Below, one piece after another: positions 31,364 to 38,726 of a stretch of 64,000 nt of DNA. The first letter of the stretch is position 1. Every line of letters starts with the position of its first letter. The position numbers and the translations under genes were made by a program. A model generated the notes under the pieces. The model ran no database searches and was not told the origin of the DNA. It saw only the letters and a list, made by a program, of their open reading frames with translations. Source of the DNA: Chlorokybus atmophyticus (Eukaryota; Plantae; Mesostigma and Chlorokybus algae); assembly GCA_009103225.1 (NCBI GenBank), contig RHPI01000671.1:402100-466099 (forward strand), read 5' to 3'.

Positions 31364-32914
31364 TCACTCGTCCGCTGCGCGTTCGGCGAGGTTGGCCGTG
31401 TTCTGATCGGCGCGCTGCTCGTTGTAAGGGAGGAACTTGCCGTTGAGGGTGATGACGACGCGATCCTCGCCATCGGAACCTTTGACCTTGTCTACCGCGC
31501 AGAAGAAGTTGATCGCCGACATGCTGAGAGAGAGAGAGAGAGAGAGACACACACGCATGAAGAGAGAGGGCAATGATGTGTATGTGGGTATGCATGTGCG
31601 CACATACACACACATACACACACACGCACATGCACACGCGCAAGCACGGACATGCACACACACACGGACGCACACACACGCACGCACACGCACGCATGAA
31701 GAATCTGATGCCGCAGTTGTGTCACGTTGTAATGTATACTGATGTATACTGATGTTTTTCAAGTGTGCTTACATGCCGTCTCCAAACTTCTCGTTGATGA
31801 GCTCCTTGATGGCCAGGGAGTAGTGGTTCATGGCCTCGCGCAGACGATACACCTGTGCATCGCGTTGAGGATTACAAGATGCACACATGCAACAACAACA
31901 ACAACTTGAGAGCTCAACCACATGACTGTGTTGCATGTGCAAGCAACGAGACTCACGGTTGGGTCGTGGACAATGCGCTCGTCAAAGGTGCGCAACGGAG
32001 GCTGCAAAACACAAAGAGAGAACCAAACAGGTTGAGGAGAAGTTGTGCACACGAGCTTTGATGCGTGCGTGCTTGCGGATGCGTGTGCGTGTGTGCATGT
32101 GTATGTGGGCGCACGCACACACGCACGCACTTGTGCATGTGCTGTTTGATATTTGATACATGCACCACGATAGAATGAACCTGCAGATCTGTCTACCCCA
32201 CCTTGCTCATCGTCGCAACCTGCTCATCAGTCAACGCCGGCACCGCCTTCTTCAACTTCTCTGCCCATGCATCAAGCAATTATCAACAACAACAATCGAC
32301 CAACACACAAAAACCACTACAACAGCGTGTATCGATGACTCGCACATGGCTTATCTGTTAGCGTACCTGCTGTGTGTGGTTTGAGCTGCGCCTGGTTGAG
32401 GAACAGCTGCGCGGCGTATGCGTTGGTCACACCCAACTCGCTGGCAATCTGATCAAACGACTTGCCGCTCTTCTCCTGATGGGTATGTGCAAGTGTATGT
32501 TGGCATGCGTGTTTTGTTATTCGGTGCGTCTGTTTGGTTGGTGCGCATGCAGTGCAATCCTGCTGATTATCATGAACCCAACGCAGAAGCTATCTGACCT
32601 TTCATGCAGTCATGTCCACTTTTGTCAACGTCATTGTTCACGATAGTGAGATAACGGATGGGCATAGCAGAGATCATGCATAGCAGCATATCGTGCATAT
32701 ATTACAAGCGTGCATGCATGCATGCAACGTGCATGCGCACGTGTAAAACTTGCATGCATTGTGTGCCTGTTTGTTTGCACGGACGCAAAGGTGCAATGCA
32801 TGTTGGGACTTCGAACAACACCTCTTGATTTTTGCAACATTTTCGAGTGACAGTAGAGTAGTGGTAGAAGGCTGAAAGCATGCAGCCAGTCGGTCAACTC
32901 ATGAATGTAAGCAA

Positions 32915-32981
<67 letters not shown>

Positions 32982-33055
32982 CAGAGACTCGCTCTCGCCT
33001 TTGCGGCCATGAGCTGCTCCACCAGCTCCGCCTTCTGAGTGAACAAGTGCGCCAT
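31364..33055 (-). CDS. cynS: Cyanate hydratase (cyanase), 5 exons
   Basis: [19 protein letters not shown]|[36 protein letters not shown]|[20 protein letters not shown]|[15 protein letters not shown]|[27 protein letters not shown]|[33 protein letters not shown]...*. Contains the DPTxYRLxE and FGDGIMSAI cyanase signatures. Confidence 0.96.
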
Positions 33056-33295: not shown

Positions 33296-33370
33296 TAAAA
33301 CCCTGGTTGTATTAAAACCCTGGTTGTATTAAAAAGTTTTCACAACTTTTTAATTTAACTAGGGTTTTGG
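33296..33370. promoter_or_regulatory. Compact bidirectional promoter segment with a 17-bp tandem repeat and telo-box-like motifs
   Basis: taaaaccctggttgtat occurs twice (33296-33329) and ctagggtttt lies at about 33359-33368. The segment sits between divergent cynS and the YfiM-like/SP-RING unit. Function is inferred. Confidence 0.45.
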
Positions 33371-34136
33371 CGGCAAGCTGCTGGTGGTGACGTGGGCAGC
33401 GGCGGTGAGGGCGGCGCGGTGTTGGTTGGAGCTGGCGAGGTTGTGGACGACCTGGTTGTGGGACGCCTGCTCTCGGCTGACGTTCAGGCTCTTTGTGTGG
33501 GAGCTTCGCGCCTGGCGGCTGTTGACAGGTGACTTGACGAGCTTAACATTCAAGAAAGAAAGTCAGCTGCTTTCTCCACATGCTGTTTTGCATGTATGCT
33601 TTTGCTGTTTAAACCTGCCGGTTTTCTGTCGCAAAGTATTTACTTGCAGCCAGGTGGATAATGTTCAAGGTAACAACTGGTTTGCTGTTCCTCACGTGGT
33701 GACTGCACAAAATTGAGCCAAATGAAGAAGCAAGCATGAAACGCAGTGCTTGCTTTCCATTCCGTACGCTTGTGGCAGACGTGATGACGTACAATAAACC
33801 AGGCAACATCAACTGAGCGCATGTGAAAAACAAACAGGTTGCCTCCTTGTTGTGAAGCCTTGTGTTGCCACAATTGCGTATGCCCGCGTTGCTGCATGTC
33901 CGTTATTCTAACAACAAAAATGTTCGTAGGCATGTCGCTTTGTCATTACGGCTATCATGTGCATGTTGCAACTGGTGCACATCTCACATGCTTGTTAGAG
34001 CCGGTCATCAGCGATCCTATTGCAACGTGTGTCGATTGTAATATGTGACGTATGTTTATGCAGTACATGCACACAGTTAGGTGCAGAATGGATGACACTC
34101 AATTAGTTTCCAACCGCATTACGCGTGTGCAGATGA

Positions 34137-34550
34137 ATGGGAGATGATTGGCTGGCGCTTGACAAGGCCGAACACGTCGCATTCTGTTTCTTCTGCACAA
34201 TCGCTGGTTACTTCATTGCACGCATCGCGTGCTGCGGGTCCCGCGCTTGCCAGCACCGTTGGCGACTGATTTTTGGGACAGCTGTTGGGTCACTGGTAGG
34301 GTAAGTGCAACACTTGCATGCTGTTGAGTCTCTCACCTTGCACTGGCTAAGCTCACAGTGCACCCATACCAATTGTGGTATGTCTGCTGGCAACAGGTTG
34401 TTGAAGGAAGCTGGTGACTATTGGGGCTTATGGCCAGGCATGCTGTCATTGAAGGACTTGGCCGCTGACGGGCTCGGGTGCATAGCGGCCACAGGTGTAC
34501 TCTGGCTCTACAGTCGTAATCGACAACCCAAGCGAGAGCTTCCATTGTGA
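34137..34550 (+). CDS. Small YfiM/VanZ-like membrane protein, about 105 aa, 2 exons
   Basis: MGDDWLALDKAEHVAFCFFCTIAGYFIA...WRLIFGTAVGSLVG| (GTAAGT...CAG) GLLKEAGDYWGLWPGMLSLKDLAADGLGCIAATGVLWLYSR...*. The W..DK..H / G..KE..D / S..D..AD..G pattern fits YfiM/DUF2279-like proteins and their uncharacterised plant homologues. It is not visible as a single ORF in the track. Confidence 0.8.
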
Positions 34551-34659
34551 GACAGAAACTGCATAAGGTGGGTTGGCTTGACAAGTCTATCATATGTTTA
34601 TGTTGTTCGAGCCTGCATCTTGTCTGATGGACTGGCGTGTGCGTGTGTTGTGTCCTCAG

Positions 34660-37468
34660 ATGACGCGGTGGGGCGCACACTCCACCACCGCGGCATCCGT
34701 CCCAACAGCCCCGGCCTCTTCTGCGCTGTTTTACCATGGGGCGAGCGGCGGTGCAGCCGCAGGCAGCAATTCAGTTCGCACGCAACAGGTGTGTGTTTGG
34801 TCATGGTGTGTATGTTGTCGCCGTCATCAACTGAAGGTACCATGACCATGAACTCGATAACGAGCAGGTCAAAGCGATTCTTTCCCGGGTGGCACATTTG
34901 GTCCCGGCCGCGCCATGGCAGATGCCGCTGCAGGCTCTTACGCAGCTGAGACAGCTGCTGTCGGGCTCAGCCAATATTAGCATAGAGATGCAGGAGCAGG
35001 TGTGTTTGCACGGTGTGTGCGAGCACGCAATGTACAACCCATCTTGCATGACACAATCTTGTGACTTCTGCGTGGTTGCAGGTGTTTGCTCTGTTGATGC
35101 GGATATTTGCCGCTATACAGCATCAACTCACACGCATATCGAACGGGAACGTGCCGGCAACGGACCCAAGCTTTGCCCAGGTGCTGCATCACATGCACGC
35201 ACGAACCCACACGTGCGTATGCAAACACGCCCATGCGTGCGCACCATAACGCACACGCAGTGGTTGCTGGAGCTGAACCAGTTGTCGTGCAGATCCGCAC
35301 CGTGTTCTCCAACTTGAACCCCGTGACGCAACAAAGGATGTCGGCTTACTTCAGTTCACAGCGCTGCTTGTCCATAACGCTCGTGCTGTCGCAGTGCTCG
35401 ATCCTCATTCGTGACATTGATATGTACAAGGTGAGTATTGGTTTGTATCCTACCAGTGATCCTGTACACCTGCCAGTGTTACTCACTCAATGCGATGTTG
35501 TCTCTGCAGTTAACACATGGTTTGCTAGAAACAACTCCTGTGACGCCCGCGACACCTAAAAATCTGGACTCCACGCCCGCGACTGCGCCCTTCCGGGACG
35601 TTCTCAGCTGCATGCGCCAGCCGTTCCCGCCAGCACGCAAGCAGCCGATGTCGCCGATCCCCGCCGCTTTAGTTGGTATGAACGAGGGGCGCGTGTTCAT
35701 GTTGCTGTCCACTCCAGAAGGCATCAAAGAGCTGGTGAGAGAGTCATCTCATGTGAACTTGTTTGTTTTCCCAACACTCGGTTAACACAAGGCTTAGTAA
35801 ATGATGTTCAGGTGGACACATTGTCAACAAAGCGATTGGAGCACAAAGAGACAAGCATAGCGCGAATTCGCCAGGCAAATGGTGACAGTGATGTTGATGT
35901 GTTGACGTCTACTGTCTCGCTCAAGTGCCCGATCTCTTGCGCTCGCGTTCAGGCAAGCGCGTGAGGCTGTTGGGATTATTCTTGTCATTAGGCTAGGCGC
36001 AGAGGCGTGACTCAATGCTGGTTTGCAGGTTCCCGCTCGCACTGCACAATGCACTCACACGGCCTGCTTTGACTTGGCCACGCACATGATGGTGAGTCCC
36101 CGGACATGCAAGACAGGTTGCTTGCCATGTTTAACTCGTAGCTTGTTTGTTATAATTGTAAATACATGCGTCATACAGTTTGTGATGTTGTCAGTTGCCT
36201 GCAGCTCAATGCCAGCTTGATGAAGATGCAAGCGCAAGGCAAGAGGAAAAAGGACATGTGGACGTGTCCAATTTGCCGCAAGGCTGCCAACTGGCGGCAC
36301 CTCATCGTCGACGAGTTCAGTAAGTGCTGCTTGTGGTGTGCACAAATCTTGCCATTCTGCAGAGTGTGTCCATTAACAATGGTCTCAACCCCTCATTTCT
36401 GTATCCCAGTCTGGTCAATACTCCGGGAGACGTCCGAGGACGTTTGCGAGGTGATGGTGCAGCCGGATGCCAGCTGGAGTTTGCCCGGCAAGGGCAAAGT
36501 TGTCAAGGGCGAGAATGCTATAGCTGTTGTGGACTTGTCATCTGAGACGTCTGAGAGGAAGAAGCCACGCATGCTTGCGCCAACTCCATTGTCTGCTGCG
36601 CCTGTCGTGATCGACCTCACGGACACGGACGAGGAGGCGACTGCTGTAATTGATGCTGATGATGTAAGCTCGGATGATGCGACTACTCAAGAGTTGAGTA
36701 GCGTGCGAGAGAGTGAGGATACGGCGGGCACACCTGACTGCAACAGCAGTGCTGTACAACAACAACGACAACAGCGTGTGAAAGAGGAGGCGGTGGAAGA
36801 AACGCCAGCCACTTCTGGCGATGATGAAAGTGAAGGTGGTGATCGGCAGTCGAGACCGCACCTGAATTGCATTATGGATCCGGCCGAGGTTGAATACCGT
36901 AATGCGGTGATGTTGGAGGTGCAAGAGGCAGTCCTGGCACAGATGCAACCAAATCCACCACCGGAGGCATTTGCAACGGTACAGCCATTCTGGTTTGGGC
37001 AGGCTTTAGCTGGTAGCACATATACCCCTAACGATTCCACGTCTTCGCGCGTGCTGTATGAAGCCGACGTTATGCGCGAGTTGCATAGCCCCCCGCCATC
37101 CCAACCCAACAATCCCCCTGAACCGCTCCCAAGCTGCATCCCGAGTCCAATGTATGTCCCGACGATTGTGAACATCAACACGGCTTCTTATGGCGAGCTG
37201 CGGCAGCTGCCAGGTACACGCGCATGCGCGCGTGTCCTGAACATCAGTAGTAGCGCACGCCCTCACAGCGCATTCACCAACCAGCACACTTAACATAATA
37301 TCTCGTCGTGTTCTCGCAGGCATTGGGCCAATTCTTGCCAAGGCGATAGTGGAAGGCCGACCATACTGTGAAGTCCGCGATCTGCGCTTGGTACGAGGCT
37401 TCGGGCCGATGCATATGATCAAGCTGGCGCACAGGCTGGCGGTTGATGACTCAGGCGTCCCAACATGA
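34660..37468 (+). CDS. SP-RING (MIZ/zf-MIZ) SUMO E3/E4 ligase-like protein (SIZ1/PIAL family) with C-terminal ComEA-type helix-hairpin-helix
   Basis: The SP-RING reads DSDVDVLTSTVSLKCPISCARVQ|VPARTAQCTHTACFDLATHMM|...WTCPICRKAANWRHLIVDEF|..ILRETSEDVCEVMVQPDASW. An acidic linker carries SIM-like IAVVDLS and VVIDLTDTDEE. The C-terminus reads IVNINTASYGELRQLP|GIGPILAKAIVEGRPYCEVRDLRLVRGFGPMHMIKL...*. Confidence 0.85.
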
Positions 37469-38726
37469 CTTTAAGGCGTAGCGGGCATGTTGCTCTACGA
37501 GTCTGCATCATGTTCAATCAGGTGGAGCTGAAGATTGAGGGTAGCTTAATTCTAATCACATAGCAAGGATATCAGCGGCGGCTACACAGCATGCCAAGGC
37601 TGGGGTTGATGAGTCGTGGAGGCAATGAAGGCATCATTGTTTATGGCATGGTCATGGTTGTCTCATCATCTTCTGTTTTGTCTCTGCCAAGCTGCATGCC
37701 ATGGTGGTGGTTACCGCTGGTCAATGTTGGAGCTTGCTAAGTAGACAAGGAGTTGTACAGATGAAAACGAGTTGCACTGTTTCACAGGTATGTTGTTTGA
37801 AACTGTTATTGAAATGGGGATGTTTGTCTATATTCCAAAGCTTGTTGAAACTCCTGGGAATGATTGGGTCGTTAAATTAATAATATAAGGGAAAAGGCAT
37901 ACACACGCGTGGTTACTGTTTACCTAAAGAAGCAAGTGCAGGCAAAGCTTATGCTGAGCAATGCACTTCGGGCACTCAATTGCTTTGAACGCTTGGCGCA
38001 GTGTGGCTGGTGCAATTGTGGCGGTGAGGTGCTCCCAATGCGCAACGGTGCTTTGTGGTGTAGCAGTGTTGAGGTGCGTGTGCTTGGTGGCAATGTGGCG
38101 GTATAGTAGTGTGAATGTACTAGCAACAACGCTGTACGCATGTAACTCGCATGTGAGATATGAACATCTGTGTATCAGGAGTGTTATGTAAGCTTGACAG
38201 GATACTCGCTGCACTCCGTCAGCTGTACAAATTGTATGCAACGGCTGTACTGTATACATCAAAAAATGCATGTACTGGTGCCACACCCGTCACGGATGTA
38301 CAGAAAGCCGAAGCTCGATTGCAGCATGCACATTCCTGCCTTGCATGCGTTGTACATGCTGGCGCAGAGAAGCAAACACACCAGTCTCACCCAAACACGC
38401 ATCAATGGTTGACCACACCAGGCTGCAACACCCACACCTAATACTATACTGTGTGTGCTGCAATGAGTTATTGCCTCTGTGCCACGTCGCGGCAGCATTG
38501 CTGTACCCAAGCAGCACTCAGTTCTGGTGCATCGTTCCTTACCTATGAGCCACATCAGCTCAAGCATGTACAGACCAACAATGGAGATGTACCATATCCT
38601 GGAACTGCCTACGGGAGCACCTTGGGGTCCTTACCCTTGTCCTTATGTGTGAGTTATTTGCAAACAGGTTTGGACAAACAGGAAAAATGCATATGGAGCT
38701 TCAACTGCTGCATTCCACACGAGGGC

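Follow-up and report, generated by a model that had tools for sequence, protein, structure and literature searches.

Bicistronic nuclear mRNAs in which a small open reading frame (ORF) precedes a larger one are well documented in chlorophytes (Gallaher 2021, PMC7896298; Duenas 2024, PMC11291117). In this published class, median lengths of the upstream frame (ORF1) are 291-357 nt and the median distance between the two frames is 40 nt in Auxenochlorella (PMC11291117), while leaky scanning is favoured as the route to the downstream frame (ORF2) by mutagenesis in Auxenochlorella and in vitro assays of Chromochloris loci (PMC11291117, PMC7896298). A bicistronic CDC26-TTM3 transcript is also known from land plants and algae, the pair being deeply conserved (cited in PMC11291117). 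Here a locus of this kind is described from the streptophyte alga Chlorokybus atmophyticus, located in a stretch of 64,000 nt (assembly GCA_009103225.1, contig RHPI01000671.1, positions 402,100 to 466,099 of the forward strand; hereafter the window, to the first letter of which all coordinates of the locus refer). In the letters of the window, an ORF1 of 105 codons in two exons (34137-34550) is followed by an ORF2 of 664 codons (34660-37468), and both complete ORFs are present on one assembled transcript in each of two RNA studies. The two products are assigned below to the YfiM-1/AT1G15900 family of small membrane proteins and to the SP-RING proteins, respectively.

The RNA evidence comes from transcript contigs aligned to positions 33300-37600. 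A search of sequencing runs matched six, and the two main ones contained about half of the sampled words, which is the share that spliced RNA would give. One contig each was obtained from a 2021 study (X1, 2711 nt) and from a different study of 2013 (X2, 2516 nt), and in both of them all 12 introns are missing at GT-AG borders (GC-AG once); this exact removal of introns shows that the contigs derive from RNA. Both carry the joints 33528>34133, 34300>34397 and 34567>34660, then every joint of ORF2, and continue past 37600. A first-pass annotation, made from the letters of the window, had proposed a bicistronic mRNA with both ORFs and had predicted the joint 34567>34660; the spliced contigs of two studies support the former and contain the latter. 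The same annotation had placed two shared 5' untranslated region (UTR) exons upstream; the leader exon ending at 33528 is present in the contigs, whereas a mini-exon near 33650 is in neither of them, 33528 being joined directly to 34133.

All coordinates given for the ORFs and for the intron between them were re-derived identically from the window sequence. This intron has the donor AAG/GTGGGT (GT at 34568-69) and the acceptor CCTCAG ending at 34659, followed by the ORF2 ATG at 34660-62, so that splicing leaves the two ORFs 17 nt apart, with ORF2 in frame +2 relative to ORF1. When ORF2 is read back over the joint, a TAA is met in its frame at 34517-19, and ORF2 therefore cannot be extended upstream, as had been argued when an N-terminal extension or fusion was dismissed in the first-pass annotation; stop-codon read-through is unable to fuse the two ORFs because their frames differ. 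An in-frame TGA (34134-36) stands immediately 5' of the ORF1 ATG, and no ATG occurs in the scanned leader exon region (33444-33528). Regarding polyadenylation, a motif scan of 34038-36156, including the 109 genomic bases between the ORFs, found neither AATAAA nor ATTAAA nor TGTAA, in line with the earlier view that the interval has no room for a poly(A) site plus promoter.

Compared with the green-algal bicistrons, the Chlorokybus locus has an ORF1 of similar size (318 nt), a short spacer (17 nt), a short leader (at least about 60 nt), a weak start context at ORF1 and a stronger one at ORF2, different reading frames, and conserved proteins encoded by both ORFs. It differs from them in having an intron at the spacer and a 4-codon upstream ORF (uORF) over the ORF1 AUG, in that the ATGs preceding ORF2 are not clearly depleted, and in its host, a streptophyte, whereas the published surveys are of chlorophytes. 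The locus had been likened to a phenomenon of green algae: it matches that known class of bicistron, but lies outside the chlorophytes in which the class was described. The CDC26-TTM3 transcript offers a precedent in the streptophyte lineage, again with a small conserved protein encoded 5' of a larger gene on one mRNA; the genes are others, however, and the Chlorokybus pair is not conserved.

Regarding the identity of ORF1, database searches were run exon by exon or with the public protein model of the locus (P0001, see below), while the joined ORF1 and ORF2 were used for checks of frame and ATGs and for tblastn against fetched loci. An exhaustive protein search with ORF1 exon 1 yielded full-length relatives of 102-125 aa, and ORF1 is about 50% identical to small proteins from Micractinium and further algae and 34-35% identical to land-plant-like metagenome contigs; a second search named two of these relatives, both hypothetical proteins, from Micractinium sp. 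CCAP 211/92 and M. tetrahymenae. Metagenome contigs L022, L023, L024 and L027, which are probably host-plant DNA in plant-associated metagenomes, carry AT-rich, intron-less genes of the AT1G15900 type (113-116 aa), and the land-plant-like L022 and L027 stood in for the AT1G15900 sequence in the comparison. Alignments of the homologues contain invariant DxW, DKxxH, KExGD and SxxDLxxD-G motifs and a shared C-terminal LP[IL]; the plant-type proteins end in ...LPI and ORF1 in ...ELPL, and the stop at 34548-50 is therefore taken as the natural end of the ORF1 protein. The hydropathy peaks of ORF1 (residues 13-33, 43-57 and 76-93) correspond to three hydrophobic helices.

The relationship to the bacterial protein YfiM, proposed in the first-pass annotation, was confirmed by comparison of an algal profile (A2) with Escherichia coli YfiM using hhalign (probability 87.7%, E 3.4e-6, 78 columns), and each of the two ORF1 exon halves also aligns colinearly to E. 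coli YfiM (E 0.002 and 0.047). All four residues named as the catalytic centre of E. coli YfiM, H31, E72, D87 and D91 (bioRxiv 10.64898/2026.09.16.752124), are kept in ORF1 as H13, E59, D75 and D79, and these positions vary little or not at all in alignments A1 and A3. Pfam and NCBIfam gave no match for the two ORF1 exon peptides, and ORF1 relatives scored 15.9 and 19.9 bits with Pfam DUF2279 (PF10043), below the cut-off of 28.6, with E. coli YfiM as a control at 39.3. The ESM Atlas gave weak leads for both exon peptides (DUF2279 0.78, DUF2238 0.75), a search of PDB sequences with the algal profile yielded no relatives, and a word-based protein search with ORF1 exon 2 gave no candidates within a length range of up to 142 aa, which left out the 750-aa public model of the locus itself. 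A shared intron position in the ORF1 genes of Chlorokybus and Micractinium was considered and set aside as uninformative, the introns lying about two codons apart and in different phases.

The plant YfiM-1 family, of which AT1G15900 is the type, is listed apart from YfiM-DUF2279 and was gained before the chlorophyte-streptophyte split (Burroughs et al., PMC12419801), and both YfiM and AT1G15900, members of the lipocone superfamily, hydrolyse lipid-linked (dolichol-linked) oligosaccharide pyrophosphates (bioRxiv 10.64898/2026.09.16.752124; PMC12419801). The description of ORF1 as an uncharacterised membrane protein is thus superseded, as the family has now been characterised (bioRxiv 10.64898/2026.09.16.752124). 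Judged by its alignments, ORF1 represents the Viridiplantae YfiM-1/AT1G15900 family in Chlorokybus and is a predicted three-helix membrane enzyme; it shares with the family its size (105 aa), the three hydrophobic helices and the DKxxH, KE and DLxxD motifs. Unlike E. coli YfiM it has no lipoprotein signal peptide and stays under the Pfam DUF2279 threshold, and whereas Arabidopsis AT1G15900 is described as an ordinary free-standing gene, the Chlorokybus gene is a 5' cistron.

ORF2 was recognized from its domains. The zf-MIZ (SP-RING) domain scored 36.5 bits on the whole public protein P0001, over the Pfam cut-off of 33.5, which upholds the earlier naming of this domain; it is colinear over ORF2 exons 6-8, where the Cys/His pattern CP..C.H..CFD...CPIC is visible. 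A ComEA-like helix-hairpin-helix domain, HHH_3, follows over exons 9-10 (45.9 bits on P0001, cut-off 27). By its domain content, ORF2 is an SP-RING (zf-MIZ) protein of the SUMO-ligase type with 664 aa. No Pfam match to SAP or PINIT was found in the N-terminal ORF2 exons or in the whole model P0001, and the PIAS/Siz subtype is not established because these domains were not found. Of 4175 candidates scored in a word-based search with the C-terminal half of ORF2, none was significant; the length range of up to 670 aa left out the 750-aa locus model. The combination of an SP-RING with a C-terminal HHH_3 of the ComEA type (window 37100-37468) is unusual.

Investigation of the neighbours of ORF1 homologues revealed a different partner in other algae. 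In both Micractinium genomes the YfiM-1 gene is followed on the same strand, after 26-28 nt, by a Methyltransf_16 gene (L002, 10001-12722; L009, 6001-8838), and the same pair was found in Chlorellaceae-like contigs (L010/11, L016, L017/18, L019-21, L025, L028 and L031), with a spacing of 18-30 nt across Micractinium and the related algae. The contig L031 is intron-free, cDNA-like and carries both ORFs, and was probably derived from cDNA. At about 830-1212 of L031, the YfiM-1 frame has no in-frame ATG 5' of the conserved DDPWL motif, so that translation in that species may begin at a non-AUG codon, or else the 5' end may be variant or incomplete. In L003-L008, which come from a compact metagenomic alga, the neighbour is a convergent Sec16 gene and the small gene appears to stand alone. 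As in Chlorokybus, the small gene of the YfiM-1/Methyltransf_16 tandem lies upstream on the same strand, with a pyrimidine at -3 of its own start and A at -3 of the next; the downstream gene, however, is of the lysine-methyltransferase family there and an SP-RING gene in Chlorokybus, and the RNA evidence for the tandem, the intron-free L031, is indirect. The tandem is a candidate conserved bicistronic locus.

Local tblastn found no ORF2 (SP-RING) relative adjoining any ORF1 homologue in L002-L015, and the 64-kb window contains no Methyltransf_16 gene. Conserved adjacency of ORF1 and the SP-RING gene in other algae, which the first-pass annotation had put forward as a check, is thus rejected on the basis of L002-L015, the partner in Chlorellaceae-like algae being Methyltransf_16. 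Since the small gene has another partner in other algae, the pairing is probably an arrangement of expression rather than a functional link, and the suggested coupling of a membrane protein to a SUMO ligase should be read in this way.

Taken as a whole, it is probable that the locus works as follows. Transcription from one promoter upstream of about 33471 would give one spliced bicistronic nuclear mRNA, on the same molecules of which both ORFs would lie rather than on separate mRNAs, and both would be translated, cistron 1 into the 105-aa YfiM-1 protein and cistron 2 into the 664-aa SP-RING protein with its C-terminal HHH domain. Ribosomes would pass the weak upstream AUGs and start at ORF2 mainly by leaky scanning, which is adopted here as the most likely route by analogy, because experiments support it at such green-algal loci. 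The start contexts were judged by the general rule of A or G at -3 and not by a matrix specific to Chlorokybus: positions -3 and +4 are T and G at ORF1 and C and A at the uORF beginning at 34133, while position -3 of ORF2 is A. Two Micractinium species show the same contrast of a pyrimidine (ORF1) with A (ORF2) at -3, making three species in total. The exon from 34133 opens with ATGAATGGGAGATGA, in which three ATGs in three frames lie within 14 nt, and five ATGs in all precede ORF2 (34133, 34137, 34144, 34430 and 34440). On completing the 4-codon uORF, ribosomes would have moved beyond the ORF1 AUG, and by scanning onwards they might add to the translation of ORF2. Short uORFs also cross the ORF1 ATG in Micractinium (L002, 9964-10026; L009, 5966-6010); their occurrence in three species may be due to chance.

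Several observations weigh against this reading. There is no clear depletion of ATGs before ORF2 (5 observed, 6.3 expected, a single locus giving such a count little power), nor in ORF1 plus spacer (3 observed, 5.1 expected), and two of the ATGs before ORF2 are preceded by a purine at -3, a context less suited to leaky scanning than those of the published sets. The ORF1 stop is followed by ten exon junctions, and exon junctions 3' of a stop could expose an mRNA to nonsense-mediated decay. The contigs, moreover, are assemblies into which overlapping transcripts could be merged, and transcript ends, strand, abundance and rare isoforms are not visible in them.

The strongest competitor concerns only the route to ORF2, which on the same bicistronic mRNA might be reached by termination and reinitiation, either after ORF1 across the 17-nt spacer or after the 4-codon uORF. 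The very short spacer, the lack of ATG depletion before ORF2 and the minimal uORF overlapping the ORF1 AUG would suit such a route, minimal uORFs permitting efficient resumption of scanning. Reinitiation is, however, generally inefficient in eukaryotes after an ORF as long as 105 codons, and the weak context of ORF1 beside the stronger one of ORF2 fits leaky scanning. Reinitiation was left open by Gallaher 2021 (PMC7896298); the Auxenochlorella mutational and Chromochloris in vitro tests favour leaky scanning (PMC11291117, PMC7896298). Reinitiation is thus unlikely as the main explanation, but it keeps an appreciable minority share of the probability.

A contig over two genes is not proof of a single transcript, and in green algae many loci are "incompletely polycistronic" (PMC7896298). 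Two overlapping monocistronic mRNAs could accordingly have been merged by the assembler, the ORF1 mRNA being polyadenylated within a retained 34568-34659 intron and the ORF2 mRNA starting inside ORF1 exon 2. This would require a promoter within a coding exon of 171 nt and a poly(A) site in a region where none of the signal motifs was found, and the independently assembled contigs of two studies follow the same unbranched path. The small Micractinium gene is, again, too close to its downstream neighbour for separate ends. Such a merger is regarded as improbable, and a single mRNA with both cistrons is preferred.

A single fusion protein is represented in the public data. The protein P0001 (750 aa), which was the top match in the search with ORF1 exon 1, is the EukProt/JGI model Chrsp21S03355 of Chlorokybus atmophyticus, in which ORF1 residues 1-88 are fused directly to the ORF2 methionine; a donor at 34497 with GT at 34497-98 would join ORF1 codon 88 in frame to the exon with the ORF2 ATG, giving a membrane-anchored SUMO ligase. 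Apart from the existence of this model and its preserved frame, it may be said for the fusion that contigs drop rare variants and that a minor isoform could escape them. Both RNA contigs, however, reach 34567 and use the donor at 34568, GTACTC is a poor donor, and the fusion would truncate the last helix and lack the conserved tail at the C-terminus (...ELPL, compared with ...LPI in the land-plant-like homologues), whereas every ORF1 homologue is a free-standing small protein. The same model takes a GT that lies six nt before the GC donor seen in the RNA contigs (35953), with the loss of two residues of the SP-RING loop, and by misplacing this GC-AG intron it looks like the product of a gene predictor. 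The fusion in Chrsp21S03355 is read as an artefact of gene prediction, such as bicistronic loci can be expected to produce, and a genuine fusion protein is very improbable. Least probable of all is that ORF1 is a mere regulatory uORF of the SUMO-ligase gene whose peptide has no function of its own, as its position in the 5' leader and small size would allow, against which stand its conservation from bacteria to plants (four catalytic residues, three hydrophobic helices and C-terminal tail), the in-frame splicing of its intron and the demonstrated enzyme activity of the Arabidopsis family member (bioRxiv 10.64898/2026.09.16.752124).

Table 1. Features of the YfiM-1/SP-RING locus of Chlorokybus atmophyticus, in coordinates of the window.
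Feature	Position	Strand	Evidence
5' leader exon, minimum extent	33471..33528	+	Contig X1 start 33471, 55 nt 5' of joint raw-placed at 33525 (33528 after 3-nt cut shift); donor CAG/GT
5' UTR intron, 604 nt	33529..34132	+	Joint 33525>34130 (cut +3), GT..AG, X1 and X2
4-codon uORF (ATG AAT GGG AGA TGA), begins at first base of exon, overlaps ORF1 ATG out of frame	34133..34147	+	Sequence
ORF1 coding exon 1: codons 1-54 plus 2 nt; DxW and DKAEH motifs; first hydrophobic helix	34137..34300	+	
ORF1 intron, 96 nt, phase 2	34301..34396	+	Joint in X1 and X2, GT..AG
ORF1 coding exon 2: KExGD and SxKDLxxD motifs, last helix, tail ending LPL; stop TGA 34548-50	34397..34550	+	
GT donor of fused model Chrsp21S03355, unused in RNA contigs (these run to 34567)	34497..34498	+	P0001 versus window
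Inter-ORF spacer of mature RNA, 17 nt	34551..34567	+	Sequence
Intron between spacer and ORF2 ATG, 92 nt, without poly(A) signal motif	34568..34659	+	Joint 34565>34658 (cut +2), GT..AG, X1 and X2
ORF2, 664 codons, 10 coding exons	34660..37468	+	Joints, exon borders, intact ORF, Pfam
ORF2 exons	34660-34788, 34868-34999, 35082-35180, 35293-35430, 35510-35734, 35812-35952, 36029-36091, 36205-36319, 36410-37213, 37320-37468	+	
GC-AG intron of ORF2	35953..36028	+	Contig joints, exon borders

The presumed promoter region just 5' of the leader exon contains two repeats. One is a long (GA/CT)n microsatellite at about 32880-33040, which appears as SLSLSL/RERERE when ORFs are translated; the other, at about 33296-33338, is a tandem duplication in which aaaccctggttgtatta, a unit of about 17 bp, occurs twice.

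Regarding novelty, the class of two-gene mRNAs is known, and the YfiM-1/SP-RING bicistron is a further example, to which three points add value: the streptophyte host, the identity of ORF1 as a member of a newly characterised enzyme family, and the exchange of the partner. The ORF1/SP-RING pair was not found in searches of the Duenas 2024 supplements by term and short motif, and the Gallaher 2021 lists, which were not checked, cover other species; neither was the YfiM-1/Methyltransf_16 tandem found in the same searches of these Duenas supplements, and no nuclear bicistrons in Chlorokybus were found in the searchable literature.

The locus adds an RNA-supported bicistronic nuclear locus in Chlorokybus, which belongs to the early-branching streptophyte lineage most distant from land plants. 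It also places a member of the newly characterised YfiM-1/AT1G15900 family in an algal 5' leader, and genes hidden in this way can explain patchy "absences" of the family in phylogenetic profiles, while correction of Chrsp21S03355 prevents its misreading as a membrane-anchored SUMO ligase. Tentatively, and with less than an even chance of being right, the YfiM-1 gene may have remained a 5' cistron throughout the Viridiplantae algae, weak in its start context and less than 30 nt from the next ORF, while its partner was exchanged between the SP-RING gene in Chlorokybus and Methyltransf_16 in Chlorellaceae. If so, the way in which the small gene is expressed (its dosage being set by leaky scanning on a host mRNA), and not the pairing, would be under selection, and nuclear bicistrony of this kind would predate the chlorophyte-streptophyte split. 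The change of partner between lineages provides a natural test of functional linkage between bicistronic partners.

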